Translations under genes and position numbers: made by a program | Sequence record: MW218148.1 | Reading direction: 5' to 3' (one strand) | Length of the DNA: 64,000 nt | Notes under the pieces: model-generated | The model's database searches: none | What the model was told of the DNA's origin: nothing | The model's input: only the letters and a program-made list of their open reading frames with translations | Shown here: one piece after another, positions 31,171-63,380 of the stretch | Layout: each line of letters opens with the position of its first letter | Numbering within the stretch: the stretch's first letter is position 1

Positions 31171-31359
31171 GTGATAACAATGCCTTCAAGAGTAGAAATT
31201 AATAGTTCTGGAATGATTATAAGTACAGTTGGCGTTAAAATGGATGATCAAAATAAAAAAATGAGAGAATTTATTTTAGATATCAAAAGAACTGGAAATT
31301 ATAATCAAAAAGATTTAGATGAATTAGTAAAAGAAATTGTTAAAGATAATTTTAAATAA
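31171..31359 (+). CDS. Small accessory protein (C-terminal tag)
   Basis: Ends EIVKDNFK; AGGAG RBS (start could be ATG 31180). Confidence 0.7.
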   Translation: MITMPSRVEINSSGMIISTVGVKMDDQNKKMREFILDIKRTGNYNQKDLDELVKEIVKDNFK

Positions 31360-31361
31360 GG

Positions 31362-31829
31362 ATGATAAATAATATGTCAAATGAAAAAGTAATTGCTAAA
31401 GAGTTAACGTTAGATCAGAAGATTAGACTATTTGAACCTAAAGTAGATGAGGAAACTTATTTAAGACCACTTAGTCAAGTTGATGAATCATTTTATAATG
31501 AAGTTATTAAAGATGATTTAATTGAAAGAATTAATAATGAAGACCATAAGTTTGAAGATAATTTTGATTACCATATATTTAAGAACGGTCCAATACAGTT
31601 AATTGGTTTTATTTATAAGTTCGAATTTAGTGATGAAGCATCTAATGTTAAAAAAGAGAAAGTTAATGAAGGTAATATATACTTTGGAAGTTTTATACTA
31701 AATAATAAAAATAAGAAAGATGATTCATTATATTATCTTCAAGTTGATAGTAGTTTAGTTGACTTTAAGTTAGTGGAAAACAAGAAGTATAAAGAATTTG
31801 GTAGAAGTCTATTCAAATTAGTTAAGTAG
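31362..31829 (+). CDS. Hypothetical protein
   Basis: 155-aa ORF in a tightly packed array. Confidence 0.7.
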   Translation: MINNMSNEKVIAKELTLDQKIRLFEPKVDEETYLRPLSQVDESFYNEVIKDDLIERINNEDHKFEDNFDYHIFKNGPIQLIGFIYKFEFSDEASNVKKEKVNEGNIYFGSFILNNKNKKDDSLYYLQVDSSLVDFKLVENKKYKEFGRSLFKLVK

Positions 31830-31831
31830 GA

Positions 31832-32119
31832 GTGATAATAATGGGTGAAGAAATCAAAGATTTAATAAGTAAAATAAATAGCATGAAACTTGAGTTTAAA
31901 CAGATGGATTACAAATTATCTAGTGATACACAAGTTAATTATTTTGAAATAGAAAAAATTAATGAATATATTAAACTTCTACATGAAGATAATCAAAGTA
32001 TCAAAAAAGAAAATATATTGTTAAAAGAAGCCATTGTATCTATTGCTAAGCATGTTGATTTTAAAAGTGAAAGTATTAAGAAATTAACTAATGAAATTAT
32101 TGATAATAATTTCAAATAA
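31832..32119 (+). CDS. Small coiled-coil accessory protein (C-terminal tag)
   Basis: Ends EIIDNNFK. Confidence 0.7.
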   Translation: MIIMGEEIKDLISKINSMKLEFKQMDYKLSSDTQVNYFEIEKINEYIKLLHEDNQSIKKENILLKEAIVSIAKHVDFKSESIKKLTNEIIDNNFK

Positions 32120-32138
32120 CAAAGTGAAGTGATTCTAT

Positions 32139-32414
32139 TTGGATAATGAAAAAAGTTTAATTAAGCGTATGGACGAATTAGAAGAACGTACTAGAATGAA
32201 TGAAATTAAATTAAATACTATGAGAGATAATTACCATTATTTAAATGATATTATAGGTACATTAATAAATAGAATAGAGAATTCTAATCAAACTAATGAA
32301 AAGAAATTGGATGAGGTTAGATTAGAATTAGTTCGTCTTTCTAATGAATTAAATTCACATTCTAAGGTAACTAAAAAGTATTTAAAGAGTTTCATTAAAG
32401 ATAATCTTAACTAA
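32139..32414 (+). CDS. Small coiled-coil accessory protein (tag variant)
   Basis: TTG start; ends SFIKDNLN. Confidence 0.65.
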   Translation: MDNEKSLIKRMDELEERTRMNEIKLNTMRDNYHYLNDIIGTLINRIENSNQTNEKKLDEVRLELVRLSNELNSHSKVTKKYLKSFIKDNLN

Positions 32415-32418
32415 AGGA

Positions 32419-32700
32419 ATGAATTTTATGAATGTCATTAAAAGAATAATTGGTTCAGAAGAATTTATTAACACTGTAAAGAAAACTATAGCTAGAACTA
32501 AGAAAGCAGAAGAGAAATTTTACGATTTAAATAATAGAGTTGATAAAGCTCTGTCTTTAGCTAATAAAGTTGTTGAAGATAATAAAGAAAAAGAAAGGCA
32601 AATTAAAGAATTAAAAGAAGCTTTGTCTAAAGAGAAAATTAATAACAGAAGTATAAAATCCCGATATAATAACCTATTATATAAAAATGGAGGGAAATAA
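32419..32700 (+). CDS. Small coiled-coil protein
   Basis: 93-aa ORF. Confidence 0.65.
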   Translation: MNFMNVIKRIIGSEEFINTVKKTIARTKKAEEKFYDLNNRVDKALSLANKVVEDNKEKERQIKELKEALSKEKINNRSIKSRYNNLLYKNGGK

Positions 32701-32702
32701 TT

Positions 32703-32930
32703 ATGAATCCAGATATTAATTTTAATGATTATGGTTCATCTATGGATGAACTATATTCAAGAATACAACTTAGAGCAGCTCAACAGGTAGAAAAAGACAT
32801 AGTGGGAGATACTGAAAAAGACTCTCTTGAAAAAGAAGTGAAAGAACTTAGAGAACTTCTTTTTGAAGTAGCTAAAAAGTATGATGTTAAAGAAATAAAA
32901 GAATATTTAGTTAGAAAGAATATGAAATAA
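32703..32930 (+). CDS. Small coiled-coil accessory protein (tag variant)
   Basis: Ends KEIKEYLVRKNMK. Confidence 0.7.
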   Translation: MNPDINFNDYGSSMDELYSRIQLRAAQQVEKDIVGDTEKDSLEKEVKELRELLFEVAKKYDVKEIKEYLVRKNMK

Positions 32931-41354: not shown

Positions 41355-41418
41355 ATAAGTGGATCATGTTAATATGATTCACTTATATTTAAATTTTATA
41401 ATAGGAGATGAAAATGAT

Positions 41419-42615
41419 ATGAAGAAATTAGATTTATCAGATTTTGAAAATAATAATCTATTAAGATTTGAAATCGATAAAAATTATGTAATAACAGAAA
41501 GTGAGAAAAATCAGTTTAAACAATTATTTCTGATAAATATGTCTTTTGACGATAATTATTTTGAAGATATTAGTATAGGTAATTTTAAGATTAAGCAGAT
41601 GACATATGACAAAAGTTTTATTAAATATTGTATATTGAATCATTTCTATGTAGAAAATGAATCTCTTAAAGAGTTACTAAGAGAAACTATAATCGAAGGT
41701 TTAGATTTTGTTGATACATTCGAATTTGATTTAATGGATATGCCTATGATTTACTATATTGATAGATTTTTAAGAGAAAATAATATTGATAAAAAACTTA
41801 AAATACACTTTACAAGTATGCACAGGGAACAAATATTTGATCTTTTTGATGAAAGTCTGTTAGAAGATTTCATAAAAAATGTAGAAAGTATTATGAAACA
41901 TGACATTAAAGGACTAACAAGTTCAATTCATGGATATGGAATTTATTTTGATGCTAGAGAAATAGGTAAAAGAAAAAGCATGTTGAAGTTAATGTCACTT
42001 CTTATGGATAAAGATTTTAAATACATGAGAAATAGTGATAGACTTCGTTACTTATCTTCATTCTATAGAAGATTTGAAAATGCTATTCTTAATGAGAAAG
42101 GTTTAGAGTATGTTGATAATTTATTAGAAAGTAAAATTAAATCTTTAAAATATAAAGACTTTGATAAAAAATATATACCAAGTAGACATACATTTTGTGT
42201 AATGAGAGGGATAGGTGATGGTAATCCTGAAATGGAATTTCAAGATTTAAAATCAGATTATATTAATAAAATTGGAGAAGAAATAACTGATGAAAATGAA
42301 ATTATTGATCTTGCAAGACTGAATTTCTATTATTTAGCTGAAGATGATGAACTTCATAAAATGCCTAGAAAAATGACTATAGCTGAAGAACAAAATGAGT
42401 ATTTTGATTTATTTATTAAAGAGACATTAAACTTAATAGAAAGTAATTTGACTTTAAATGAGAAGAAATCATTCATTGAGGATTATATAAATGCTAGTAC
42501 ATCACGTTTTGGAGGGGTAAGTGAATATAAAAATCTAAATGTAATAGTTAAATTATCTAAAGGTAGACTTAAAAAATTAATAATGAATGAAACTGTTAAA
42601 AAGACATTCATATAG
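41419..42615 (+). CDS. Hypothetical protein (C-terminal tag variant TVKKTFI)
   Basis: AGGAG RBS at 41403 supports ATG 41419 rather than GTG 41359. Confidence 0.7.
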   Translation: MKKLDLSDFENNNLLRFEIDKNYVITESEKNQFKQLFLINMSFDDNYFEDISIGNFKIKQMTYDKSFIKYCILNHFYVENESLKELLRETIIEGLDFVDTFEFDLMDMPMIYYIDRFLRENNIDKKLKIHFTSMHREQIFDLFDESLLEDFIKNVESIMKHDIKGLTSSIHGYGIYFDAREIGKRKSMLKLMSLLMDKDFKYMRNSDRLRYLSSFYRRFENAILNEKGLEYVDNLLESKIKSLKYKDFDKKYIPSRHTFCVMRGIGDGNPEMEFQDLKSDYINKIGEEITDENEIIDLARLNFYYLAEDDELHKMPRKMTIAEEQNEYFDLFIKETLNLIESNLTLNEKKSFIEDYINASTSRFGGVSEYKNLNVIVKLSKGRLKKLIMNETVKKTFI

Positions 42616-48832: not shown

Positions 48833-48845
48833 AAATATATATTAT
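48833..48845 (+). promoter_or_regulatory. Putative early promoter
   Basis: AAATATATATTAT. Confidence 0.6.
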
Positions 48846-48900: not shown

Positions 48901-49197
48901 ATGACAATAAAAATTATTAAAAATGAAATACTACAAGAGGCTGTAGAAGGAAAACAACATAACGGTGGAGGTTACGAGCATACTCGTACAACTTTCGAAT
49001 TCCAAGGGAAACAAGGAATTTTCGAAGACACTTCTTGTGGTGATTTCGGTAGCAGATTCTTCATGGAATTCGATGGAAAAATGGCTATGTGGGGAAGTAT
49101 GATTGATGAGGAACTCGAATACAGTGAATTCGATGAACAAGAACAATCAGAACTTCTAGAGCATTTTAGAGTTCCTGTTTTTGAAGAAACAATCTAG
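48901..49197 (+). CDS. Small acidic hypothetical protein of atypical composition
   Basis: 98 aa, AAAAGGA RBS, visibly more GC-rich than neighbours, TTC/GAA codons. Confidence 0.75.
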   Translation: MTIKIIKNEILQEAVEGKQHNGGGYEHTRTTFEFQGKQGIFEDTSCGDFGSRFFMEFDGKMAMWGSMIDEELEYSEFDEQEQSELLEHFRVPVFEETI

Positions 49198-49235
49198 GAC
49201 ACTAATGTCCTAGATTTCTCTTTATTTTTTTTTCT
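49191..49235 (+). terminator. Intrinsic terminator
   Basis: AATCTAGGACA-ctaa-TGTCCTAGATT plus long T tract. Confidence 0.8.
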
Positions 49236-49259: not shown

Positions 49260-49272
49260 AAATATATATTAT
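49260..49272 (+). promoter_or_regulatory. Putative early promoter
   Basis: AAATATATATTAT. Confidence 0.6.
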
Positions 49273-49315
49273 AAAAATAGATGTAATTAAATATATTGAA
49301 AGATGGTGTTTTTAT

Positions 49316-50011
49316 ATGGAAAATATTAAATTGTATAGAAATTTAGAGAATGATGAGAAATTTGTATTACCTAAAGGTGATAACGATAATGGAAGATTTC
49401 TTTTTGAAGTTATAGAGCAGATAAATAATAATACTTATCCTTTTTATGAAAATCATCCTATTAAATTAAGTCAATATTATGGAGTATTAGAAGAGAAAAT
49501 AATGAATTTCCATTGTTATACGTATTCTGATATTATTATAAATTTAAAAAATTTAATTGGAATAGATGAAGATGTATTAATTAAAAGTGTTAAAGATGAG
49601 GATTCCAAAACTTCATCAATTGTTTGTTTTACTGATCCCAATACACTTGATGAAGGTATCTATGAAAGTATGTTTAATATTGTGTTAAATACAAAACAAG
49701 ATAAGGAAATAATTGAGATATTAAATAATTATGAGAATGATATGTTTTTTATAAGAGCATATGAAATGCTTAAAGATCAAGTTGTTGTTAAAGTAGAATT
49801 TAAACAAGATTATTTGTCTGATACAGAAAAAGGTATATATGAATCATTAGATAAATTAATATATTATATATTGGGAGATTTAAAAATCAAAGTACATGAT
49901 ACATATATGTACTTTATGGATTTCTTAAGATGGAATTTGAAATTTATTGCTGAAGAAATTACTGATGAAAAAGAAATTAAAGATTATTTAACTAGAGAAA
50001 GTTTTAAATAA
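49316..50011 (+). CDS. Accessory paralog-family protein (C-terminal tag)
   Basis: Ends EEITDEKEIKDYLTRESFK. Confidence 0.75.
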   Translation: MENIKLYRNLENDEKFVLPKGDNDNGRFLFEVIEQINNNTYPFYENHPIKLSQYYGVLEEKIMNFHCYTYSDIIINLKNLIGIDEDVLIKSVKDEDSKTSSIVCFTDPNTLDEGIYESMFNIVLNTKQDKEIIEILNNYENDMFFIRAYEMLKDQVVVKVEFKQDYLSDTEKGIYESLDKLIYYILGDLKIKVHDTYMYFMDFLRWNLKFIAEEITDEKEIKDYLTRESFK

Positions 50012-50035
50012 GCGAGTTAAAAGGAGGAATTATTA

Positions 50036-50710
50036 ATGGAAGGTTATGATTTTGACTTATATATAATAAACAAAGATTTGAAAAATAATCATTTTATGAA
50101 AATAAATAGAGAAAAATATATTAATGATAGAGATTATATTGAAAAAGTAAATACCATTAATATAATAAAATTATTAAATCATGATGCTGATACTGATTAT
50201 GAAAATATAATATCGTTTAAGGTTAATTGTAAATTAAAACTAAGAGGTTTTGATAATTATAAAGATATTACATTACGTTACTATCAGAATATGAATGACC
50301 ACCAAACTAATTTTGCTGGTATAATATTTACTTCCACTGAGTTAAATATTATAACTAAAGAGAAAGATAATAGTTATTTAGAAGATGAGATATTTTATGA
50401 GTTTAATATGATGAAAAGAAAAAATTTAGGTATGAATAACAAAAAGAATACGCTTAGGGTTAAAACAAGTGAATCAATAACCTTATCGGACATTGATGAA
50501 AAATATCCTATAACTTATTTATCGATTAATAAATTTACAAAAGAATTCTTGAAGATGATAACTGAATTAAATAAATATGAAGACATACAGTTTTTAATTG
50601 ATGAAAAATATTATAGTGTAAAAGATATAAATTTATGCAATGAAAATTTATTTAGAACTGCAACTGATAAGGAATTCAAGAATTATCTAGTTAAAAAAGG
50701 TTTTAGGTGA
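50036..50710 (+). CDS. Accessory paralog-family protein (C-terminal tag)
   Basis: Ends FRTATDKEFKNYLVKKGFR. Confidence 0.75.
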   Translation: MEGYDFDLYIINKDLKNNHFMKINREKYINDRDYIEKVNTINIIKLLNHDADTDYENIISFKVNCKLKLRGFDNYKDITLRYYQNMNDHQTNFAGIIFTSTELNIITKEKDNSYLEDEIFYEFNMMKRKNLGMNNKKNTLRVKTSESITLSDIDEKYPITYLSINKFTKEFLKMITELNKYEDIQFLIDEKYYSVKDINLCNENLFRTATDKEFKNYLVKKGFR

Positions 50711-50720
50711 AAATTGTATT

Positions 50721-50733
50721 AAGTATATATTAT
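50721..50733 (+). promoter_or_regulatory. Putative early promoter
   Basis: AAGTATATATTAT followed by a hairpin at 50740-50770. Confidence 0.6.
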
Positions 50734-50802
50734 AAAAATGAGATAATGAATTAATATAATTCATTATCTCTATATTAATTTAATTAGGAGAGTGAAAAGG
50801 AT

Positions 50803-51417
50803 ATGATTTTAGAAAAAAATAAGTTTTATTATAATAAAAATATCGATGAGCTTTTTATAATTGGTAAAGATGAAAGTGATATTAATGATAAGATAAATAA
50901 GCTATATTATAAAAAATTAATAGAAACAAATTTAAATTACTATAGCTTACATGATGACCTTTATTATAACATGAATTTACGTTTTGATTTAATTGATAAT
51001 GAAGATATACATTTTAGTAATATGTATAATGGAGTTAGAAAGAATATTTCAGTAGATACCTTAGAATTTTCATATACAAAAGTTAAAACTAATGAAGTAA
51101 TTCTACAATTAGAAACTTTTATTAGTAGACTTAATGATCCACAATTTTTAGAAGTTGATAAGGATTCAAATTCACAAGGTGTTAGTATAACAATGGTAAA
51201 AAGATTTTATGAAAAAGATATTAAAGGTTATGATCAGCACGAAAATGATTTATACAAATTATCTGATTTGATGGACAAAATGATTAAAGAAGAGAATGAT
51301 GGAAATATTAAAATCTTCATAAAAGGTATTGATATATTTGAACCTCATGCATATTTTAGAGAATTAGAAGATGAAAGAGAAATTAAAAATATTTTGGTTG
51401 AGAAGAACTTTAAATAA
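50803..51417 (+). CDS. Accessory paralog-family protein (C-terminal tag)
   Basis: Ends YFRELEDEREIKNILVEKNFK. Confidence 0.75.
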   Translation: MILEKNKFYYNKNIDELFIIGKDESDINDKINKLYYKKLIETNLNYYSLHDDLYYNMNLRFDLIDNEDIHFSNMYNGVRKNISVDTLEFSYTKVKTNEVILQLETFISRLNDPQFLEVDKDSNSQGVSITMVKRFYEKDIKGYDQHENDLYKLSDLMDKMIKEENDGNIKIFIKGIDIFEPHAYFRELEDEREIKNILVEKNFK

Positions 51418-51437
51418 ATACTTAATAGGAGGTCAAT

Positions 51438-52085
51438 ATGAAAGATATTAAACTTTATAAAAATAAGTCAACTGGAGTTAAGTTTTTATTAGATAAAAAT
51501 GAGAAAGGTAAATTTCTTGGTAGAGCTTTAACTGAAATAAATAATTCTGCAAGAGATAAGGAATTCATAATAGAAAAACTTTATAAAAGTTATATGTTTA
51601 CGGATAAACTAAGATTATTCTTCTTTGTATATTCAGATATTAAAATAAACTTAAAGAAACTTATAGGTAGAGATGAAATCATCGATATTGAATATAAGCA
51701 ATTAAATAATTCATTTGAAATTAATAGTGTCTATAACTTTATGTATTTTCATTTAGCTTTATATCCAGAAAATCCTAAAACTTTAAATAAACTATTGAGA
51801 TACAATAATGAAGATTATAGTGTTGGTAGCTGTATAAATGCAGATAAATTATTAGATATAAAAATTATATTCAAAGATGACTATTATAATAGAAATGGAG
51901 AAATCGATCCTTTTCACGCATTGGATCTTTTTATAGAATATATACTGGATCAAACAGAAGTTAAGTATGAAGGAAAATTTATACCCTTTATGGAATTAGT
52001 TGATATTCTGTTTGATTTATCTGTAGAAGAAGTTAAAGATAAAAAGGAATTTAGAGAATACGTAGTTAGAAAAAATTTTAAATAA
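51438..52085 (+). CDS. Accessory paralog-family protein (C-terminal tag)
   Basis: Ends VEEVKDKKEFREYVVRKNFK. Confidence 0.75.
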   Translation: MKDIKLYKNKSTGVKFLLDKNEKGKFLGRALTEINNSARDKEFIIEKLYKSYMFTDKLRLFFFVYSDIKINLKKLIGRDEIIDIEYKQLNNSFEINSVYNFMYFHLALYPENPKTLNKLLRYNNEDYSVGSCINADKLLDIKIIFKDDYYNRNGEIDPFHALDLFIEYILDQTEVKYEGKFIPFMELVDILFDLSVEEVKDKKEFREYVVRKNFK

Positions 52086-52094
52086 AGGATAGGA

Positions 52095-52730
52095 GTGATG
52101 TTTATGGATAAAGAGAATATGTATAAGGTTAAAGGTAAACAAGAATTAGTTGAATTTAATAAAGATAAGTACATTAATGAAGATGAATATAGATTTAAAA
52201 TGATTGCAGATGTCTTAAAAAGATTTTATGTAAAAGATACAAGACTAAACGTACCTTTCACAAAAATTTTAAATTTACCAAAAAGTATTTTAAAATTAAA
52301 ATTATCTTATATAGAAATGGAATATAAACAGACGACAATTTATAAATCACCAAATCTAATGCAGACTTGGTCAGAAATTATCTTTTATTTCAATGAAAGA
52401 AATAATGACCATTATATTGATATATTATACAATTATTATGATAAAAATAATAATGAAATAGAAATAATTGACAATGGTAATAAATTACGTATTATGTATT
52501 TGCATGAAGAACCAAAAGATAATATGAAAGTTTCAGAAATAATCATTAGTAATTTCCTAAATAAATTTCTTCTCAATTTAAAAAGATTTGATGATTATGT
52601 AGATTTGGAAGTTTTATTAAATAACAAATTTCATAGCATAGACGATGTTAATATGCTTAATGAAGATTTATTTGCTCCAGCTACAGATAAAGATATTAAA
52701 AATTACTTAATAAACAAGAATTTTAGTTAA
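52095..52730 (+). CDS. Accessory paralog-family protein (C-terminal tag)
   Basis: Ends FAPATDKDIKNYLINKNFS. Confidence 0.75.
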   Translation: MMFMDKENMYKVKGKQELVEFNKDKYINEDEYRFKMIADVLKRFYVKDTRLNVPFTKILNLPKSILKLKLSYIEMEYKQTTIYKSPNLMQTWSEIIFYFNERNNDHYIDILYNYYDKNNNEIEIIDNGNKLRIMYLHEEPKDNMKVSEIIISNFLNKFLLNLKRFDDYVDLEVLLNNKFHSIDDVNMLNEDLFAPATDKDIKNYLINKNFS

Positions 52731-52785
52731 ATCAATTAACTTTCTTTTATATTAATTAATATGATGGAAGTGAGTTGAAAAATAA

Positions 52786-53565
52786 ATGTCTGATAATATT
52801 GAAATTGATTTGATATCACAAATTAATGATATGATGGAAGAATATAAAATGTTAGTAAAATTTAAGGATAAAATGGAAAAGAAAGAGGTTCAGTTAGAAC
52901 ATCGTATAATGGACTTAACTAAAAATCTAAAATATCCTAAGCATACATTTGTATCTAACATGGAGGCTAATATCATATCTGTAGAGAAAGAAATTAAGGA
53001 CACTATTATGCAAATGAAAAATGTTAAGAAAGATATTATAGACTTAACTATGAAAGCACAGAAAATGTCTATTGATGATGAATCAGAAGATAATTACAAA
53101 GAGCTTGCTAAAAATGTTCTTAATCAACTTAATACAATGTCTAATAAAGACATCTTAAATAGTATGATAGAACCAGAAGATGATACTAATGAAGATGATG
53201 ATTTTATTGGAGAATTAGATAGTAAGTTAGCTGAATTGGATGAAGAAGATAAAATGATTAATAAAGACTTAGATCGTAAAGAAGAGTTAAGTCAAGAAGT
53301 TAATGATCTTGATCAACAAGATTTATCATCTATACTGAAAGTTTATAAAGGTACTTTACAATTCTTCGTCATGGGAGATGAAGCGGACGAGTATGAATTA
53401 TTAGTCGCTGATATGGATATGAATATTATAGAAGAAGATGATCTTCAAGATGAATATCCAGAATTATTCACTATGACTAGAGATCTAGTATTTGAAGATG
53501 TTGAAGGTAGAGATGATATAGTTAAAGATGAATTCGGAAACTTATATCAAAAAGCTGAATTTTAA
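52786..53565 (+). CDS. Acidic hypothetical protein with N-terminal coiled coil
   Basis: 259-aa ORF, GGAAGTG RBS. Confidence 0.75.
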   Translation: MSDNIEIDLISQINDMMEEYKMLVKFKDKMEKKEVQLEHRIMDLTKNLKYPKHTFVSNMEANIISVEKEIKDTIMQMKNVKKDIIDLTMKAQKMSIDDESEDNYKELAKNVLNQLNTMSNKDILNSMIEPEDDTNEDDDFIGELDSKLAELDEEDKMINKDLDRKEELSQEVNDLDQQDLSSILKVYKGTLQFFVMGDEADEYELLVADMDMNIIEEDDLQDEYPELFTMTRDLVFEDVEGRDDIVKDEFGNLYQKAEF

Positions 53566-53573
53566 TTAAATTT

Positions 53574-53608
53574 TACCCATAATATATTATTATAATGTAT
53601 TATGGGTA
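53574..53608 (+). terminator. Hairpin (terminator or regulatory)
   Basis: TACCCATAATA / TATTATGGGTA. Confidence 0.55.
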
Positions 53609-53629
53609 TTTATTATAGGAGGAAAGAAA

Positions 53630-53977
53630 ATGGGATTTGAATTAAGTATATATGGAATTAATAAAAGTAAACAAAGAGAATTACAATGGTATCTTGATTA
53701 TGGTAGGTATGAAAGAGAAAAACACCATGTTTTTGAATTGTATTTAAATAGACCTAATGAACTTTATAAAGTATTTTCTTCTAAATCAAAAAAGAATCAA
53801 AAGGATGATGAAATCATTGTTATTTCTAACGAAGATTTAAGAGAGTTAATGATTAGTGATTTAAGAGAAGATAATTTCTATTATGATTTATCTGATTATT
53901 ATAAACTAATGTCAGAAATAACTAAAATTGATAGAGTTAAAAATGACTTCTATCTTATATTAGATCCATCATTTTAA
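53630..53977 (+). CDS. Hypothetical protein
   Basis: 115-aa ORF, AGGAGG RBS. Confidence 0.7.
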   Translation: MGFELSIYGINKSKQRELQWYLDYGRYEREKHHVFELYLNRPNELYKVFSSKSKKNQKDDEIIVISNEDLRELMISDLREDNFYYDLSDYYKLMSEITKIDRVKNDFYLILDPSF

Positions 53978-53994
53978 TAAAGAGGAGAATTATT

Positions 53995-54129
53995 ATGTTG
54001 AAAAGATTATATGAATTATTATCTAAAAAGAGATATGAAAGTAAATTAAAAGAATTTATGTTTACTTATCATGACCATGAACATCTTAATGAAGTTCATG
54101 AATACAATAAAAAGGAGAATGATAAATAA
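53995..54129 (+). CDS. 44-aa hypothetical protein missed by the ORF track
   Basis: AGAGGAG RBS; MLKRLYELLSKKRYESKLKEFMFTYHDHEHLNEVHEYNKKENDK; its stop overlaps the next ATG (TAATG). Confidence 0.65.
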   Translation: MLKRLYELLSKKRYESKLKEFMFTYHDHEHLNEVHEYNKKENDK

Positions 54130-54539
54130 TGCTATCAGAATACAAATTAAACTCAAGTAAAGAAGATATCAAACAAGAATTAAGAAATTATGGATTCAGA
54201 AAAGATTCTTATACTAAAGCACTGATATACAGAAAGAGAGTAACTAATCCTAATGATGTTTTATTTATAGAAGCTGAAATTGTTATTGAAACTAATTCAA
54301 ATTTAGTTAAGTTAAACTACTATGACAATAAGCATAATAGATTTAATCCATCCAATGAATCTGATGAAGTTAAAAAAGGTTTATCTATATTGGATGACAT
54401 GAAGGAAAAAGGACTTTTAGTTGAACCTGAATTGATTCAAAATGAAGAAGAAAAAGAAGTATTAGATAGATTAGCTCAACAACGTGAAGAAATGGAAAAT
54501 GGACAAGTTGCACCAAATCCAGATAATGATGAAAATTAG
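54129..54539 (+). CDS. Hypothetical protein
   Basis: 136-aa ORF, AAGGAG RBS. Confidence 0.7.
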   Translation: MLSEYKLNSSKEDIKQELRNYGFRKDSYTKALIYRKRVTNPNDVLFIEAEIVIETNSNLVKLNYYDNKHNRFNPSNESDEVKKGLSILDDMKEKGLLVEPELIQNEEEKEVLDRLAQQREEMENGQVAPNPDNDEN

Positions 54540-54542
54540 AAT

Positions 54543-54555
54543 AAATATATATTAT
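54543..54555 (+). promoter_or_regulatory. Putative early promoter
   Basis: AAATATATATTAT followed by a hairpin at 54565-54594. Confidence 0.6.
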
Positions 54556-54623
54556 AAAAATGATATCTCAATACTATTAATTTAGTATTGAGATTATTAT
54601 GTCGGGTTAGGAGATGAAAAATA

Positions 54624-55418
54624 ATGGGAAAAGAAACATTTTTAATTAAAGAAGATGACAGGTTAATTGATAATGATATAGACTTTGTAAGTAGATGCCA
54701 ATATACTTCATATATTTTATCAAATATCTTTTTCGAAAAATTTAAAAAAGATATATACTACACTCGTCTAACACAATTTTTTGATGATATGTATCTATCT
54801 AGTAAATTTGGTTTTTATGATGAGGATCGTGAATTAAATATATTCAGTCAGCATATATTTGAACAATTCTTATTCAAAACTTCCAATAGTGATAATCAAT
54901 TTGGACAATTTAGAGTGGATATAAACTTTCAACCTGTTGAAGAAACTTTTATGTTAAAGATTTATTTTGAAAGTGACACAGAAGAAGAATTATTTGATAA
55001 ATTCACAGATGGATATTTAGGGAAATATAACGTTTTAAATCAAGGTAAAAGTCCTAATATTTATTATAAGGATAAGGAACGTCTAATTCAAGAATTAAAA
55101 GAATTAAATGAATACACAAAACAAATAGGACATTATGATCCTAAAATTGATCATACGAAAATAGTAGATTATCTGATAGAGGAAAAAGAATATATCATAA
55201 TGAATTTGATATACCAAATTCATTATATACCATTAATGACTCTTTATGAATTATCTTCAATGCATGATATTGAATTCTTTATAGAATTCAATAATGGATG
55301 GTCAATAGAATTAATAAATATAAAAGACATTATTGAAAAAGATGTTAATAAACTATTTATGAGATTTAAAACAGAAAAAGATGCAAGAAACTATAAAGTT
55401 AAAAAGGGGTTTTCTTAA
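54624..55418 (+). CDS. Accessory paralog-family protein (C-terminal tag)
   Basis: Ends KTEKDARNYKVKKGFS. Confidence 0.75.
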   Translation: MGKETFLIKEDDRLIDNDIDFVSRCQYTSYILSNIFFEKFKKDIYYTRLTQFFDDMYLSSKFGFYDEDRELNIFSQHIFEQFLFKTSNSDNQFGQFRVDINFQPVEETFMLKIYFESDTEEELFDKFTDGYLGKYNVLNQGKSPNIYYKDKERLIQELKELNEYTKQIGHYDPKIDHTKIVDYLIEEKEYIIMNLIYQIHYIPLMTLYELSSMHDIEFFIEFNNGWSIELINIKDIIEKDVNKLFMRFKTEKDARNYKVKKGFS

Positions 55419-56200
55419 TGGGAAAAATTAATAAATACTACACTAGTAAAGCTGAAGAAGGATTTATGGAATTGACTTTTGATGAAGAAGAAACAAAATA
55501 CTTTGACTTTAAGTGGAAAGTCTTAAGCGAATTATTCGCTGAAATGCAGTTAAAACATAATAAAAGATTTTTCATAACTCAAGAAGAGTATGATGATGAT
55601 GATGGTTTATTTGGTATTAGTTTAGACTTTGATGCTTTTCCTACAGTGAAATACAAATACAAGGGTAAAACAAACAAAATGGAAATTCTCCTATACGCTA
55701 CAATACGTTTTAGCCTAAAAGAAGAAGACGATAACTATATCAAGTTTAAGGTTATCCCTGTATATAATAATAGTGTGATAGGTAATCGATTATTTAATAA
55801 GAGATCTGGTATATTTGGTGAAAAGAGTGGAGAATTAAATTTACCGCATAGCTTTAATAAAGAAATTATCTCTCGATTTTTAAAATATTATAAAAGTCAT
55901 ATAAGAAAAGGGAAAAGACCTGTAGAAATCAAAGATGATTTACACAAGATATTTAAAGATACAAATAAAACAATCTTTGAATTACTAGATCAAATACAAG
56001 ACCATTCGGATATTGAATTTCTTATATCACCAGATTGGAATTTTAGTGATAAAGAAAAAACAAAAGAAGAAGGCTTTAGTTTTGAAGAAGAATATGAAAA
56101 GTATATCAGTTTAGATGAATTTGATGCTGATGCATATTTTAGAGAAATAACTGATGAGAAAGAAATTAGAAATTTAAAAATTAATAGACATTTTAAATAA
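55418..56200 (+). CDS. Accessory paralog-family protein (C-terminal tag)
   Basis: Ends YFREITDEKEIRNLKINRHFK. Confidence 0.75.
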   Translation: MGKINKYYTSKAEEGFMELTFDEEETKYFDFKWKVLSELFAEMQLKHNKRFFITQEEYDDDDGLFGISLDFDAFPTVKYKYKGKTNKMEILLYATIRFSLKEEDDNYIKFKVIPVYNNSVIGNRLFNKRSGIFGEKSGELNLPHSFNKEIISRFLKYYKSHIRKGKRPVEIKDDLHKIFKDTNKTIFELLDQIQDHSDIEFLISPDWNFSDKEKTKEEGFSFEEEYEKYISLDEFDADAYFREITDEKEIRNLKINRHFK

Positions 56201-56216
56201 AAGGAGAAATAATATA

Positions 56217-56975
56217 ATGGATATAAATAAAAGTGGTAAAAAATATTTTTTATGTAAAGTAACAGATGAATTAATTACAGTTAATGATTTATCCATATAT
56301 GGTGTAGATAAAGATTATTTATATCTTCCACAATTAATTTCTAATTTACAAGTAAAAAATAATGAAGAAATAAGTATAACTTCTGAAGAAATTGTTGGTA
56401 CAGATGATGGAGGAACGAATTTATGGTCAGGGGTTATGTCATCTAATAGTACTTTCCCAACTATGGGATATAGATTTAATAATGAAAAGTCAATGGATAT
56501 ACTTATCTTTGACTTTGATATTATTTTCAACGAAGTAATAGAAAATGAAAACTATTTAAAAATTAAAATTGATCATGCTTATAATATAGGTGTAAATGCA
56601 AAGCTTTTTAATAAAGCAATTAGTGGTATATTAGATGAAGATAAATCTTTAAAACTACCTTTCAAAACTCCTATATCTCATATGGACAGTTTAATATCAA
56701 ATTCTGAAAATAATGAAGTTTTGCAACAAATATTAACTGAAGTAAATAGATCTATATTAGAAGTTTTATCACAGATTAGGGATCAATTCAACATAGAATT
56801 CTATATATCGGATGGATGTTTCTCACATATAACGTACGTTGATAAAAGAGATCATAGTAGTATAAATAAAAATTACTATAATCTATTTGATGAATACGAA
56901 ATGTCTGGAACATTTAAAGAAATTACTAATGAGAAAGACATTAAATCATATTTAGTGAAGCATAATTTTAAATAA
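56217..56975 (+). CDS. Accessory paralog-family protein, tandem duplicate A
   Basis: Clearly alignable with 56989-57738; ends YLVKHNFK. Confidence 0.8.
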   Translation: MDINKSGKKYFLCKVTDELITVNDLSIYGVDKDYLYLPQLISNLQVKNNEEISITSEEIVGTDDGGTNLWSGVMSSNSTFPTMGYRFNNEKSMDILIFDFDIIFNEVIENENYLKIKIDHAYNIGVNAKLFNKAISGILDEDKSLKLPFKTPISHMDSLISNSENNEVLQQILTEVNRSILEVLSQIRDQFNIEFYISDGCFSHITYVDKRDHSSINKNYYNLFDEYEMSGTFKEITNEKDIKSYLVKHNFK

Positions 56976-56988
56976 AAGGAGAATTATA

Positions 56989-57738
56989 ATGGCTATAGAT
57001 AAAAAATATTTTTTAAGTAAAATAACAGATGAATTAATTGAAGTTATTGACCTTTCCAAATATGGTGGAGTCGAAGATATTGCATATCTCCCACATTTAA
57101 TAACTTCATTACAAATAAAAAATAATGAAGAAATAAAAATAACTTCTGAAGAAATTGTTGGTACAGATGAAAATGGAAAAGAGTTATGTTCAGGTGTTAT
57201 GTCAGCTAGTAATATTTTTCCAGTTATAGCATATAGTGTTAATAATAAAAAGGCAGCGAATATACTTATCATTGACTTTGATATAATTTTTAACGAAGTA
57301 ATAGAAAATGAAAACTTCCTAAAAATTAAAATTAACAATGCTTATGATATGGGCATAAATACAATGCTCTTTAATAAAGTAATCGGAGACATATTAGATG
57401 AAGAAAATTCTTTAAAAATACCTTTTAGTTTACCTGCAGTTCATATGAGAGATCTAATACCAAATTCTAAAAATAATAAATTTTTACGAAGAATATTAGT
57501 TGAAGTAAATAGAGAAATATTACGATCTTTATCACAAATAAGAGATCATTTCAATATAGAATTCTTGGTATCGGACGCATGTTTCTCACATATAGTTTAT
57601 GATGACAGAAGAGATAGTGATGATATAGATGAGGATTACTATAATCTATTTGATGATTATGAAATATCTAGAGTATTTGAAACGATTACTGATGAAAAAG
57701 TCATTAAGGAATACTTAGTGAGGGATAATTTTAAATAA
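56989..57738 (+). CDS. Accessory paralog-family protein, tandem duplicate B
   Basis: Shares ITSEEIVGTD, DFDIIFNEVIENEN, CFSHI with A; ends YLVRDNFK. Confidence 0.8.
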   Translation: MAIDKKYFLSKITDELIEVIDLSKYGGVEDIAYLPHLITSLQIKNNEEIKITSEEIVGTDENGKELCSGVMSASNIFPVIAYSVNNKKAANILIIDFDIIFNEVIENENFLKIKINNAYDMGINTMLFNKVIGDILDEENSLKIPFSLPAVHMRDLIPNSKNNKFLRRILVEVNREILRSLSQIRDHFNIEFLVSDACFSHIVYDDRRDSDDIDEDYYNLFDDYEISRVFETITDEKVIKEYLVRDNFK

Positions 57739-57794: not shown

Positions 57795-60530
57795 ATGAAA
57801 ATTAAAAGATTAAAGTTGACAAATTTTATAGGCATCTATGCAGGAATGGGTTTAAAAGAAGTTGAGATTGATTTTAGCAAGAGTAAAAATAATATGATTG
57901 TGCTTCTTGGCGACAATGCTTCAGGCAAGACAACAGTTATGTCTAACCTAAACCCATATAGAGAAACTAATGATCAAAGAAAAACTATTATATTGGAAGA
58001 TGAAAAAGGTATAAAAGAGATTGATTATATTAAGGGTAATGATCTCTATGAAATTAAACATCATTATGGTAAAAACAGTTCACAAAACAAATCATTCATC
58101 AAGAAGAATGGTGAAGAACTCAATGAAAATGGTGGTATTAAATTATTCAATGAGATAGTCGATAAAGAGTTAGGTGTGTCTAAGGATTACTTTACGGTTG
58201 GTCGTCTAGGAGATAATGTAAGTAACTTTATTGACTATACTACAGGTGATAGAAAGTCATATATTAATAAATTTGTACCTAACATCGATAGATACTTAGA
58301 AGCTTATAAAGTTGCTAATGAAAAATTAAGAGTTATTACTAAGGATTTAAAATCACTTAGATTTGACTTAGATAAATATAAAGAATTTGATGAGATTAAG
58401 AAAGAGAAAGAAAACTTAGAAACTCTTATTGAACAGTTACAATCTGATCTTGATGAAGCTAATAAATATAAAACAACTAATGAAACTAAGATGAATTCTA
58501 TTATGGAAGAGAAGTATAAAGATATTCATCCTACTGATTATAAAAATAAATTGACTTCTGAGATTAATGAACTTAATCAAGAATTGCAAAGAGAAAAGAA
58601 ACTTAAAGAAGAAAATGAAAATTTAAGTAAATATACTATTGAGTCAGCTAATGAAAAGAAAGATAAAATTGATTCTATATTAAATAATACTAATAATGAA
58701 TTAACAATGGCTAAAAAGGATAAAGAATCAAATCAAGATAAATTAGATGACTTAATTAGTAGAAAATCTAAAATAGAGTCTCGTATGAATGCTATTAAGT
58801 TCAATGAAGATTATGACGCTTCAGATGAAATTGATTCTATTCTTCAGGGTTATAAAGATGATTTGGAAGGTATTAAAGAAGAATTAGATATTTCCAGAGG
58901 ATCTTTTGTAAGTGAGTTTGGATTACAGATTAACGATAATGTTAAAGAAGACTCATTAAAGCTATACGTAAATAGTTTCATTAATAAAATTGATGCATTT
59001 AAAGAATTTATTAATGATAATAAATTTAAATATAGCGATATCGATGGTGAATTTGAATCTGAGATTAAAGAAAATATTGACAAAATTTCTATGAACCAAG
59101 AAGAACTTAAAGGGTTAAGTGATAAACTCAATCAAATTAAAGGCAAATCTTCATTATTAAATATCTTAGAGAAAGAAGATCATGAACACTATAATGAATG
59201 TGTATTTGTACCTTTAGTGGCTGACTTTAAAGAAAATGAATTTGATTCAATCTCAGATTTAGAAGACAAATCTAAAAATCTATATAGTGAAAATCAAAAA
59301 TTAGAAGAAGAAAATAAACTATTATATAATCATATAACTCTACTAAATAAATATAAAGATTTATTGTCAAGTAGATTAGAGATGATAGAGTATATTGGTT
59401 TTGAAATTATTGACATTGACAGCATTCACGACATATTCAGTAATGGAAGTACATTCTCTAATGAAATTAATACACTTGAATCATTATTAAGAAAAACAAA
59501 TGAAATAAGAACTAACGAATACAATAGAGACAAATTAACTATTGATCTTGAAAGAAAAGAAAACGGTCTTAAAGAAGATTATTCTAACAAAAAGATCTTA
59601 TCTCAATATAAAGAAGATAAAGATGAATTAGTTAAAGAAATAGATAAAGTTAACATCAAGATAGGTGAAGTAAGTAATAATCTTAATTATCTTAATGAGC
59701 GTAAAGAAAAAGCATTAACTAACTTAGGTATTATTAATGAATTTATTAACTTAACTGAAAAATCAGAAGAGATTAAAAATAACATCAATGAGAAACAAAA
59801 ATCAATTGATGAGGTTAATGAAGATTTAATTAAATTAAGTGATTTATATAATCTTAACCAGCAGTCAGATAATAAAATTCAGTCTATCAGAGATAATTTA
59901 ACTATGAAGAAAAATGATTTAGAGTCAACTAAAGAAAAATTCTTTGCAGTTAATTCTATCATTACTAAAATTGATGAGATTGAATCTGTTTTATGGAAAT
60001 ATACTATGGTAGTAGATTCACTTAACCCTAAGAAAGACTCTATACCATTAATATTCATCACTAATTATCTTAAAGATATTGCTGTAAGTACTAATGAATT
60101 ACTTTCAGTAGCTTATAATAATTCATTTAAAATTGACTTTGACTTAACGGATAAAGATTTCTTTATTAATGTTTATAAAGGTAATGGAACTGAGTTGAAA
60201 GATATTAAAGAAGCTTCTCAAGGAGAAACAGCTTTAACTAATATTAGTTTATCTTTATCATTATTAAACAAAGTTTCTCAAGAATATAATATACTTTATC
60301 TTGATGAAATGGATAGCACTTTAGACTCTAATAACAGAAGAAGATTTGTTGATGTTATTGATAGACAGATTGATTTAATGGGATTAGAACAAGTATTCTT
60401 AATCAGTCATAATGATGAATTCTATAGTGCTAATATTGATTTAATCTTACTTAAAGGTTATGAAAGTAAAATTGATATCAATAATAAAGAAATGATGAAA
60501 GACAAAAATGTATTATTTAAAGTAAACTAA
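57795..60530 (+). CDS. SbcC/Rad50-like SMC ATPase
   Basis: LGDNASGKT, long coiled coil, ASQGE signature, YLDEMDSTLD, LISH. Confidence 0.9.
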   Translation: MKIKRLKLTNFIGIYAGMGLKEVEIDFSKSKNNMIVLLGDNASGKTTVMSNLNPYRETNDQRKTIILEDEKGIKEIDYIKGNDLYEIKHHYGKNSSQNKSFIKKNGEELNENGGIKLFNEIVDKELGVSKDYFTVGRLGDNVSNFIDYTTGDRKSYINKFVPNIDRYLEAYKVANEKLRVITKDLKSLRFDLDKYKEFDEIKKEKENLETLIEQLQSDLDEANKYKTTNETKMNSIMEEKYKDIHPTDYKNKLTSEINELNQELQREKKLKEENENLSKYTIESANEKKDKIDSILNNTNNELTMAKKDKESNQDKLDDLISRKSKIESRMNAIKFNEDYDASDEIDSILQGYKDDLEGIKEELDISRGSFVSEFGLQINDNVKEDSLKLYVNSFINKIDAFKEFINDNKFKYSDIDGEFESEIKENIDKISMNQEELKGLSDKLNQIKGKSSLLNILEKEDHEHYNECVFVPLVADFKENEFDSISDLEDKSKNLYSENQKLEEENKLLYNHITLLNKYKDLLSSRLEMIEYIGFEIIDIDSIHDIFSNGSTFSNEINTLESLLRKTNEIRTNEYNRDKLTIDLERKENGLKEDYSNKKILSQYKEDKDELVKEIDKVNIKIGEVSNNLNYLNERKEKALTNLGIINEFINLTEKSEEIKNNINEKQKSIDEVNEDLIKLSDLYNLNQQSDNKIQSIRDNLTMKKNDLESTKEKFFAVNSIITKIDEIESVLWKYTMVVDSLNPKKDSIPLIFITNYLKDIAVSTNELLSVAYNNSFKIDFDLTDKDFFINVYKGNGTELKDIKEASQGETALTNISLSLSLLNKVSQEYNILYLDEMDSTLDSNNRRRFVDVIDRQIDLMGLEQVFLISHNDEFYSANIDLILLKGYESKIDINNKEMMKDKNVLFKVN

Positions 60531-60543
60531 AGAAGGTGATTAC

Positions 60544-60741
60544 ATGTTAAATAATACAAATAAACTAAGTGAGATGGAGATAGTGCAGAAATTCAATAAA
60601 ATGCACTATCAGCTCACTATAAATAACGGTGAAGTATATACTGAAGGTCCTGATATTGATTTATTAAATGAAATAAAGAAAGACATAGGAATAATGGACA
60701 AAAGAATAAAGAATAAAAAAATAGTGGAGAGTTTTAATTAA
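60544..60741 (+). CDS. Hypothetical protein (tag variant IVESFN)
   Basis: 65 aa, GAAGGTG RBS. Confidence 0.65.
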   Translation: MLNNTNKLSEMEIVQKFNKMHYQLTINNGEVYTEGPDIDLLNEIKKDIGIMDKRIKNKKIVESFN

Positions 60742-60752
60742 ACATAATTGAG

Positions 60753-61064
60753 GTGATTCCCATGTTTAATAATCGAGAAGACATGTTTAAATACTTTGAG
60801 GTATACTTATTGGAAAGAAAATTAAATGATCGTATGAGAAGTGAGCATTATTTAGATTTTTTATTTGAACTTTGTGACGAATATGAAGTTAATATGGGTA
60901 ATTATATTAACACTCAAGGCATTATTAATGGTTTTGTGGCTTCAGGTGTTAAGGCTGACGTTCTTCATGGAATAGTTAAACTATATGATGATTTGGAATT
61001 AACAAAAGATAAATTATATAAAAGAACTAAATCGGACTTAATTAAATATACGATGGGAGGTTAA
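60753..61064 (+). CDS. Hypothetical protein
   Basis: 103 aa; GAGGTG RBS favours the ATG at 60761. Confidence 0.65.
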   Translation: MIPMFNNREDMFKYFEVYLLERKLNDRMRSEHYLDFLFELCDEYEVNMGNYINTQGIINGFVASGVKADVLHGIVKLYDDLELTKDKLYKRTKSDLIKYTMGG

Positions 61065-61069
61065 ATTAT

Positions 61070-61381
61070 ATGAATGAAGAAATAGTAGATAAAATGGATA
61101 ACTATAATAACAAGATTAAAGAGTTTAATATAATGCAGAATTACTTAAAAAGTTTACCCAAAGAAAATAAAGTATCTGAATATTTTCAGAATGATGTCTC
61201 ACTTAAAGAGATGACTTGGGCTAATGATGACTTAGGTGATTTATTTAAAGCTATTTTCCATCCTGAGTTCTATAAGGTTATGTGTCATATTATTAAAGAC
61301 TATGATATTGAACCTCCTGACTATATAAATAAATTAATTAAAAATGTTAAATTAAGAACGGTTACAAATACTTTTATGTAA
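61070..61381 (+). CDS. Hypothetical protein (tag variant VTNTFM)
   Basis: 103 aa, GGGAGG RBS. Confidence 0.7.
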   Translation: MNEEIVDKMDNYNNKIKEFNIMQNYLKSLPKENKVSEYFQNDVSLKEMTWANDDLGDLFKAIFHPEFYKVMCHIIKDYDIEPPDYINKLIKNVKLRTVTNTFM

Positions 61382-61396
61382 AGGAGAAATTGATAT

Positions 61397-61534
61397 ATGA
61401 AATTTTCATTAATAAGTTTTTCAATCTTATCTTTGTGTACAATATTAGCTGTAATATTATTTAAAAATACTACCAAACAAGATCAAGTTGATACATCTGA
61501 AGACCCTTTTGAGGGTAAAGAGATGTTCATTTAA
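61397..61534 (+). CDS. 45-aa single-TM membrane protein missed by the ORF track
   Basis: AAGGAG RBS; MKFSLISFSILSLCTILAVILFK hydrophobic N-terminus. Confidence 0.65.
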   Translation: MKFSLISFSILSLCTILAVILFKNTTKQDQVDTSEDPFEGKEMFI

Positions 61535-61550
61535 TTGTAAATATAAAATT

Positions 61551-61590
61551 TACCAAACATCCTAAAAAATGGGTGTTTGGTATTTTATCT
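61551..61590 (+). terminator. Intrinsic terminator
   Basis: TACCAAACATCC / GGGTGTTTGGTA plus T tract. Confidence 0.8.
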
Positions 61591-61661
61591 TTAATTTTTT
61601 ATGTGTTTTAAGTAACGTTTAAATTATCAGATTAGTATTTGAATTAGGGAGTGAATAAAGG

Positions 61662-63380
61662 ATGAGTCGTTTTATTAAATCAACTTATTTAGGTAAAAAA
61701 GAAACATCTTCGGGTAAAGAGAAAGTAGTAATGGTAGTTAAAGAAGAAGATGGCACTAAGAAACACATGGAAATAACTGATCCTATGATGCATTATTATG
61801 TAACTAAAGATGAACATTGGTTGCCTCCTAATCAGATTGTAGGTTCTATTGAAAAAGAAAAAGTGAGAACTGTAACATGTAAACATAAAGACATTATTAA
61901 ATCAGTAGTTAAAGAAGCAGGTAATGCTCAAGATAAAGCTGAACTTGACAGAATTATGCAATCAGGTAATCGTGATGAGTTTAGAAAATTAAAAGATTTT
62001 CATCTGCTAAACAATGCTCATGGATCTGATATTAATATTGAAGATTATAATATTAATGAGTATATTAAAAAGAATCCTGAAACTAAAGTCGGTATTGATA
62101 TTTGTTTCTTTGATATTGAGGTTGATGGATCTGAAGTTGTAGGTTTCCCAGTAGCAGGTTCAGCTGAGATCAATATTATAACAGTCGTTGATTGGAGTAA
62201 ACGTAAATGTTTAACGTTTGCACTTAAATATGATACAGATAATTATAATGAAGTAATGAGTAAACAAGAAAAGATTAAAGAAGATCTTAATAATATTTAC
62301 AATAATAAAGATAGTGAAATTGGTAAAGATTTAGGATTGGAATTTGAGATATATGAATTAGATACAGAAATGAAAGTTATTAAATCATTCTTATACTATA
62401 TTAATGAAATTAGTAAGCCGGATATATGTACCGCATGGAATCTAGATTTTGACTTCGCAACTATATTTGAACGTATCAAAGTTAATGGAGAAGATCCAGC
62501 AGATTATTTCTGTTCAAGAGATTTAGAAGACAAAAAAGCTTATTATAAACTAGATTTGAAAGCTACAGATATGGCTAATAGATCTTCAACTTTTGAAGCT
62601 AATTCATATACTAACTGGATTGACCAATTAGCTTTATATGCAAATATTAATAAACCTAATGGTGCTCTTGAATCTGTTAAATTAAATGACATAGGTGAAA
62701 AAGAAGCTGGAGTTAAGAAAGATGTTTATGAAGGTTCTATCTCAGATTTACACTTTAGAGATTATTATACATTTATATTGTATAACATTAAAGATACAGT
62801 CTTAACTGCTTTAATTGAATATAACACTAATATGTTTGATTTATTATTCTCAATTGTAGATATGACAAGAACTAGACCGACTAAGGCGCTTAAGAAAACT
62901 ATTTGTTTAAGAAATCGTAGTTCAGTATTCTTTGAAAATCAAGGGTACGTATTAAGTAACAATCACTCTAAATTATTGTCAGATCCAAATGCTGGTAAAA
63001 TTCGTGGTGGATTTGTAGCAGATATGAAATTAATTGAACGTAATGGCGATATATTAGTTAAAGGTAAAGATATTAGGTCTAATAGACTATTCACAAATGT
63101 ATGTGACTTTGACTTAAGTTCTCTATATCCATCTATTATTAGAGGATTTAATATAACACCTGAAGGTCATATTGGTAAGATGAATCTAATAGATATAAAT
63201 AGAATGGTTGCACCTAAACAAGAATTGGACAAAGAAAATTATGACTTTAACACTGAATTTGTAAGTAAGTTTAATAGTCAAGATTCTGTAGCATTTGCTC
63301 AAGAGTTTCATGGTTTACCACCTATTCTTGATGCAGTAGATGCTATAGTTGATGAGCTTGATAAAATTGATGTAGGATAA
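61662..63380 (+). CDS. Family B DNA polymerase, N-terminal subunit (3-prime-5-prime exonuclease plus motif A)
   Basis: FFDIEVD (ExoI), AWNLDFDF (ExoII), YNIKD (ExoIII), DFDLSSLYPSII (motif A); ORF ends before motif B. Confidence 0.88.
   Translation: MSRFIKSTYLGKKETSSGKEKVVMVVKEEDGTKKHMEITDPMMHYYVTKDEHWLPPNQIVGSIEKEKVRTVTCKHKDIIKSVVKEAGNAQDKAELDRIMQSGNRDEFRKLKDFHLLNNAHGSDINIEDYNINEYIKKNPETKVGIDICFFDIEVDGSEVVGFPVAGSAEINIITVVDWSKRKCLTFALKYDTDNYNEVMSKQEKIKEDLNNIYNNKDSEIGKDLGLEFEIYELDTEMKVIKSFLYYINEISKPDICTAWNLDFDFATIFERIKVNGEDPADYFCSRDLEDKKAYYKLDLKATDMANRSSTFEANSYTNWIDQLALYANINKPNGALESVKLNDIGEKEAGVKKDVYEGSISDLHFRDYYTFILYNIKDTVLTALIEYNTNMFDLLFSIVDMTRTRPTKALKKTICLRNRSSVFFENQGYVLSNNHSKLLSDPNAGKIRGGFVADMKLIERNGDILVKGKDIRSNRLFTNVCDFDLSSLYPSIIRGFNITPEGHIGKMNLIDINRMVAPKQELDKENYDFNTEFVSKFNSQDSVAFAQEFHGLPPILDAVDAIVDELDKIDVG

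Follow-up and report, generated by a model that had tools for sequence, protein, structure and literature searches.

How are nine neighbouring genes of a Staphylococcus jumbo phage related to one another when their products agree at their two ends and hardly at all in between? The stretch that raises this question (the window, 64,000 nucleotides) is 100% identical to Staphylococcus phage vB_StaM_SA1 (SA1; MW218148.1, 260,727 bp), an AR9/PBS1-like Staphylococcus jumbo phage of ~25% G+C; a record position equals the window position plus 124,000. Between 49316 and 57738 the window carries nine plus-strand open reading frames (ORFs) of 204–264 amino acids (aa), numbered p1 to p9 (Table 1) and annotated in the database as hypothetical proteins QPI17098-102 and QPI17107-110. 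A first-pass annotation of the sequence had described these as similar-sized ORFs with a common C-terminal block, and all nine were indeed found where it placed them, each ending in that block. The nine genes are real, expressed and very diverged copies of one undescribed family, and the same tail stands on 19 further SA1 proteins in other tandem arrays.

The C-terminal end of all nine proteins reads F-x-E-[IV]-T-D-E-K-E-I-K-x-Y-L-V-K-x-N-F-K. Comparing the syntenic loci of seven relatives with that of SA1 (eight phages), we found 95 proteins with this tail at the very C-terminus, which fall into 14 sequence clusters once the tail is removed. Phenylalanine at position -2 is invariant (95/95), lysine at -10 is present in 95% of the tails, and the logo is strongest at F-2, K-10, K-13, I-11, L-7, V-6 and D-15. 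Weighted by cluster, the information amounts to 2.3–4.3 bits per position over the last 18 residues, compared with ~1 bit farther upstream. In no member has the terminus been lengthened or shortened, although in seven of the nine array genes the next in-frame stop lies only 1–8 codons on. Within SA1, identical residues in paired tails use the same codon in 191 of 276 cases, where 181 are expected from codon usage. Because synonymous codon identity equals the codon-usage expectation, the tail is conserved at the protein level and not at the DNA level. A C-terminal membrane-targeting amphipathic helix of the MinD/FtsA type was considered and rejected, as the consensus tail helix is insufficiently amphipathic (hydrophobic moment 0.47, mean hydropathy -1.4).

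The SA1 genome was rebuilt from the annotated pieces of the record, and every C-terminus was scored with a 12-residue position-specific scoring matrix (PSSM) made from the 95 family tails, the expectation being taken from 74,986 internal windows. The nine array proteins score 16.5–31.6. Among the non-family proteins of SA1, 19 score at least 0 against 0.54 expected, and 10 score at least 6 against 0.07 expected. The tail-bearing proteins thus total ~28, of 44–622 aa and encoded by ~10% of the genes, with the tail at the exact C-terminus. None of 450 shadow ORFs and none of 59 genes of the AR9 and LPJP1 loci matched, and shifting the matrix window 1–7 residues inward left 0–1 matches. All 19 extra genes lie on the plus strand, most of them in further tandem arrays; the proteins of the arrays at record 60011–62574 and 80604–86284 are 140–260 aa long, and four of the five in the former start with M-(x)-K/R-Y-Y-x-x-N/T-x-x-G, for most of them in the form M-K-Y-Y-K-x-N-x-x-G. 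The orthologous arrays of phage S6, with seven copies in each, keep the tail with better scores (3–28). When the 19 proteins were aligned with the 14 clusters using hhalign, no core homology was found (probability ≤10%), and many of the best local alignments run from C-terminus to C-terminus. The N-terminal hidden Markov model (HMM) described below is weakly enriched among them (Mann–Whitney p 0.008; 1/19 above the 95th percentile), and their N-terminal membership is a matter of inspection of the ~150-aa arrays only. A weaker terminal pattern, ...V-x-N-x-F-x, was also seen in small proteins at 61070–61381 and 60544–60741, downstream of an SbcC-like ATPase.

Outside the tail, overall alignment of the nine proteins is poor (11–31% identity to p1). 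The three pairs proposed by the first-pass annotation are recovered by BLASTP: p1/p4 (E 2e-16, full length), p2/p5 (E 1e-12, C-terminal half) and p8/p9 (E 3e-99), with p7, p8 and p9 similar over their full length. All other BLASTP links among the nine are limited to the last 13–33 residues, and with the tail removed only p1/p4, p2/p5 and p6–p9 can still be aligned. The proposed pattern of conserved ends around a variable middle also holds, since hhalign without the last 24 aa links few groups only: p2 with p5 (96.7%), p6 with p7–p9 (92.4%), and C7 with C8, two clusters absent from SA1 (46%). With the tail included, most pairs exceed 80% probability, but across 19–32 columns only; a minority reach 60–100 columns through the 'IEF' strand and a few run the full length. 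The N-terminal motif, aromatic-aromatic-x-x-K/N-x-x-D/N/G-G/E-x-hydrophobic, proved real but weaker than the C-terminal block. In a leave-one-superfamily-out HMM test, which it passes in most groups, 4 of 11 held-out groups outscore all 75 control N-termini, and 7 of 11 are reached by at most 5 of the 75 controls. As a separate observation, the p1-p2 and p4-p5 pairs (49316–52730) look like the product of one old duplication of a two-gene segment, and the DNA counterpart of p4-p5 is missing in all seven other phages compared.

To this we added AlphaFold2 models of p9 (from a 17-sequence alignment) and p1 (7 sequences), whose sequences do not align with each other. Both are predicted to be compact single-domain alpha/beta chains (confidence values in Table 1) with the same order of elements: an N-terminal hairpin, a helix and an antiparallel meander of 5–7 strands, followed by a helix with one or two strands, a long helix leading into the short 'IEF' strand, and finally a short strand (F-x-E) and a C-terminal helix. 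This last helix is the tail, modelled with a predicted local distance difference test (pLDDT) score of 84–92. By standard helix rules, its conserved D..E and [N/G]-F would fit an N-terminal capping box and a Schellman C-cap. A Foldseek search of the p9 model against the PDB returned nothing at E ≤0.001. Weak PDB neighbours are common to both models over equivalent ranges (1s28, 3kxy, 4g6t, 4h5b, 7a0h and 4akr); type III secretion chaperone-like and START/Bet v 1-like alpha+beta folds, in which an antiparallel sheet stands with one helix and a second, long one, may be comparable, the PDB matches being weak. In BFVD, the Foldseek rows at E ≤0.01 for either model are entries without a UniProt name, of lengths that suit family members from several of the clusters. 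The ESM Atlas yielded nothing usable, and its own p9 model is poor. One alpha+beta arrangement is probably common to the bodies, with no known fold demonstrable. Since the two models agree in element order and in their weak PDB neighbours, the middle looks like one very diverged fold and not like a freely swapped insert. The earlier proposal of a single scaffold displaying a variable insert is thus partly supported. By sequence, the similarity of most cross-group pairs is nearly confined to the last 20 aa; in the predicted structures it is not.

Relatives of the family were found in one clade only. They occur in 10 of 50,697 phage records, all of them Staphylococcus jumbo phages. When 1.84 billion representatives were searched with a profile, 17 proteins came back, each of them a family member; a profile built from the nine proteins matches exactly those nine in the whole SA1 record. 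None of the nine has a significant match in Pfam, PHROG, NCBIfam or PADLOC, searching PDB sequences by profile found nothing, and word-indexed protein searches matched family members only. Scans of IMG/VR with the flanking ATPase gave no relatives, nor did scans with the back-translated tail pattern: of the 25 contigs that matched the latter, 22 share an unrelated tail belonging to a small protein family, and the other 3 match by chance and out of frame. At the syntenic site, AR9 and Listeria phage LPJP1 lack any family member. The accordion-like variation suggested by the first-pass annotation is borne out by the copy numbers, which are 7 in LY01, 9 in SA1, 12 in Machias, 13 each in PALS2, PB50 and Madawaska, and 14 each in S6 and MarsHill. 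On one side the array is bordered by a gene for a virion RNA polymerase subunit, on the other by an SbcC-like gene that carries the annotation 'virion associated' in MarsHill and Machias. Family arrays flank the x1–x3 block, with x1 as the conserved core gene amid them; x1 (52786–53565) is very acidic, has a net charge of -39 and resembles AR9 g142 and an LPJP1 protein at its N- and C-termini.

Early promoters had also been proposed for the array. The AR9 early promoter consensus is AAATATATATTAT-N6-G (PMC5312081; also the MarsHill preprint), and allowing at most one mismatch to it, we found the array to consist of three units, each behind an AR9-type match (before p1, p3 and p6; Table 1). These three sites recur in place in nearly all eight phages, MarsHill being without a match before its p3-type gene. 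The array is present as contigs in four RNA-seq runs of one study, and the contig breaks fit the promoter units. Contig depth is 40–760 for the array and 10^4–10^5 for an adjoining 98-aa gene; because depths differ more than 100-fold from this neighbour, we take the signal to be RNA and not carried-over DNA. Contigs start at 49298–49307 and 50777–50796. Perfect hairpins of 12–14 bp lie at 50740–50770 and 54565–54594, starting ≤3 nucleotides (nt) from the predicted +1 of two of the early promoters; they could either terminate the unit upstream or form 5' stem-loops on the early transcripts. Contigs break at these hairpins, which may come from assembly alone. As inverted repeats break assemblies, contig starts just past the promoter hairpins are not taken as transcription starts. 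In each of the eight phages compared, all frames of the array genes are open. Between close orthologues, the ratio of nonsynonymous to synonymous substitution rates (dN/dS) is 0.31 for the N-terminus, 0.39 for the middle and 0.29 for the tail, compared with 0.13–0.17 for four flanking conserved genes and 0.41 for the small gene u2. The array is under purifying but relaxed selection.

Table 1. Location of the array genes, promoter matches and other tail-bearing loci of SA1 (window coordinates unless marked as record; pTM, predicted template modelling score)
Feature	Position	Strand	Description
AR9-type early (virion RNA polymerase) promoter match	49260..49280	+	before p1-p2
p1	49316..50011	+	231 aa, subfamily C2, pairs with p4; AlphaFold2 pLDDT 78, pTM 0.77
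p2	50036..50710	+	224 aa, subfamily C5, pairs with p5
Early promoter match	50721..50740	+	before p3-p4-p5
p3	50803..51417	+	204 aa, subfamily C4; opens second early unit
p4	51438..52085	+	215 aa; old duplicate of p1 (28% identity); without DNA counterpart in other phages
p5	52095..52730	+	211 aa, annotated start 52104; old duplicate of p2
x1 (acidic, 259 aa), x2, x3	52786..54539	+	conserved non-family genes splitting the array; no tail
Early promoter match	54543..54562	+	before p6-p9
p6	54624..55418	+	264 aa, subfamily C3; distant relative of p7-p9, hhalign 92-97%
p7	55418..56200	+	260 aa, subfamily C0
p8	56217..56975	+	252 aa, subfamily C0
p9	56989..57738	+	249 aa, subfamily C0; AlphaFold2 pLDDT 82, pTM 0.86
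Small tail-bearing proteins	31171..32930	+	62, 95 and 75 aa; PSSM scores 7.7, 0.5 and 25.8
418-aa protein, weak tail match (score 3.9)	41359..42615	+	directly behind an early promoter match
Tail-bearing array	record 51.4-54.9 kb	+	
Tail-bearing array	record 60.0-62.6 kb (60011-62574)	+	five genes, ~150 aa
Tail-bearing array	record 80.6-86.3 kb (80604-86284)	+	

The safest reading is that these proteins form one fast-diverging, clade-specific early superfamily whose two ends are the most constrained parts. Going further, we see about an even chance that the array of nine is the biggest block within a clade-specific superfamily of early phage proteins, probably host-directed binders. Its members would be soluble and mostly acidic (isoelectric point 4.6–5.7 in seven of the nine, with p2 and p4 near neutral), built from an N-terminal beta-hairpin and a C-terminal strand and capped helix ending at ...N-F-K, and the alpha/beta body between these ends would have diverged until the sequences could no longer be aligned. 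The conserved ends would serve one fold as its folding core or as a shared handle, and the fast-changing body would be a binding surface; that the ends may be the structural core is favoured by the models and capping motifs. Each paralog may then target a different host factor early in infection, whether for takeover or for counter-defence. We infer such a role solely from the early promoters, the acidity, the flux in copy number and the restriction to one clade. Several points weigh against this picture. Profile similarity between most groups spans those 19–32 columns that are the tail, and the cross-cluster BFVD matches (E 1e-3 to 4e-6) have template modelling scores of only 0.25–0.48, leaving a common fold unproven. 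The early class is assigned from promoter motifs and contigs, which give no timing; the available part of the SA1 transcriptome paper does not list the array ORFs, and its supplement gives no per-ORF expression classes. Positive selection was not seen at the resolution of dN/dS by region.

The tail might instead be an autonomous C-terminal signal, such as a docking peptide, degron or address, carried by otherwise unrelated proteins and read by one phage or host machine. We consider this somewhat unlikely, though it would account well for a tail placed exactly at the C-terminus of 28 SA1 proteins of very different length, for the lack of core homology between the extra proteins and the family, for a terminus that stays fixed with in-frame stops close by, and for charged residues (K-10, K-13, E-14 and D-15) conserved as strongly as the hydrophobic positions. 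The monomer models, however, make the tail a confident packed helix in which D..E and [NG]-F would have structural, capping roles; the tail also co-occurs with the N-terminal hairpin in the ~150-aa arrays, and it is too weakly amphipathic for a membrane anchor. The more specific version, in which the ...K-x-x-F-K end is a phage-wide C-terminal address by which one phage or host reader, recognising the free C-terminus, docks, localises or clears ~28 early proteins on schedule, is in our view doubtful. A genomic position between a virion RNA polymerase subunit gene and a 'virion associated' gene would suit packaged, injected internal proteins like those of T4, with the tail as a capsid-targeting signal, but early promoter motifs precede each unit, the conserved signal is C-terminal with no protease site evident, and the DC4 virion proteome, a shallow set of 15 proteins obtained by mass spectrometry, contains no family member (the p9 homologue in DC4 is UFVDC4_00040); such an origin has the slimmest chance. 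It is also very improbable that the copies are decaying or neutral duplicates, or that their shared 3' ends are a DNA-level recombination or regulatory repeat. Homology blocks between phages do often start at the tail, 45–71 nt ahead of the stop codon of an upstream gene that is not orthologous, and recombination inside tails is possible; the codon statistics within SA1 give it no support, and dN/dS lies well below 1 in all three regions, with all frames open.

The SA1 family has partial counterparts among known systems. The motif-marked early paralog families of jumbo phages, such as the ~35-copy zinc-ribbon expansion of Bacillus phage G (PMC7824862), are likewise lineage-specific orphan expansions in tandem arrays, with one short conserved element. 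There is no sequence relation, however, and whereas those proteins are small, the SA1 bodies span ~60–620 aa, and their element always stands at the exact C-terminus and has an N-terminal hairpin as its partner. The internal proteins of T4 are a variable set with a short conserved terminal peptide, at least one member being an anti-restriction factor. Their capsid targeting sequence is N-terminal, is cleaved by the prohead protease and marks late packaged proteins. The SA1 set resembles them as a variable set sharing a short conserved terminal peptide, but its genes lie behind early promoter motifs and none was seen in the shallow DC4 virion proteome; a T4-type N-terminal targeting peptide is out, as the conserved SA1 peptide is at the extreme C-terminus. 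The takeover module of SPO1 and the terminal-repeat genes of Twort-like phages are orphan gene clusters behind strong early promoters that vary between relatives. The SA1 array is like them in its orphan clusters, early promoters and variation between relatives, whereas those blocks hold unrelated small genes and SA1 has one superfamily with a common signature. The genome papers of MarsHill/Madawaska/Machias, DC4, PALS2 and SA1 do not mention the family.

The abundant gene next to the array deserves separate mention. It encodes a 98-aa acidic protein (isoelectric point 4.4; 48901–49197, plus strand) with its own promoter match at 48833 and a terminator-like hairpin at 49191–49216; its contig depth is >100 times that of its neighbours, and the protein is found in six of ten related phages. 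Uracil-DNA phages of this kind are without a known uracil-DNA glycosylase inhibitor (PMC10303552), and this abundant early acidic protein may be a candidate for one.

Approximately one gene in ten of these Staphylococcus jumbo phages, which are candidates for therapy, belongs to one undescribed early family. If its members are host-directed binders, they would amount to a natural collection of inhibitors, ready for use, against staphylococcal functions or defences, and differences in host range may be due to those in copy number. Should the tail be a signal, dozens of phage proteins would have in common a simple, testable C-terminal code for sorting or timing, of a kind undescribed for phages. 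Under either reading, the signature lets these orphan genes be annotated as one family.

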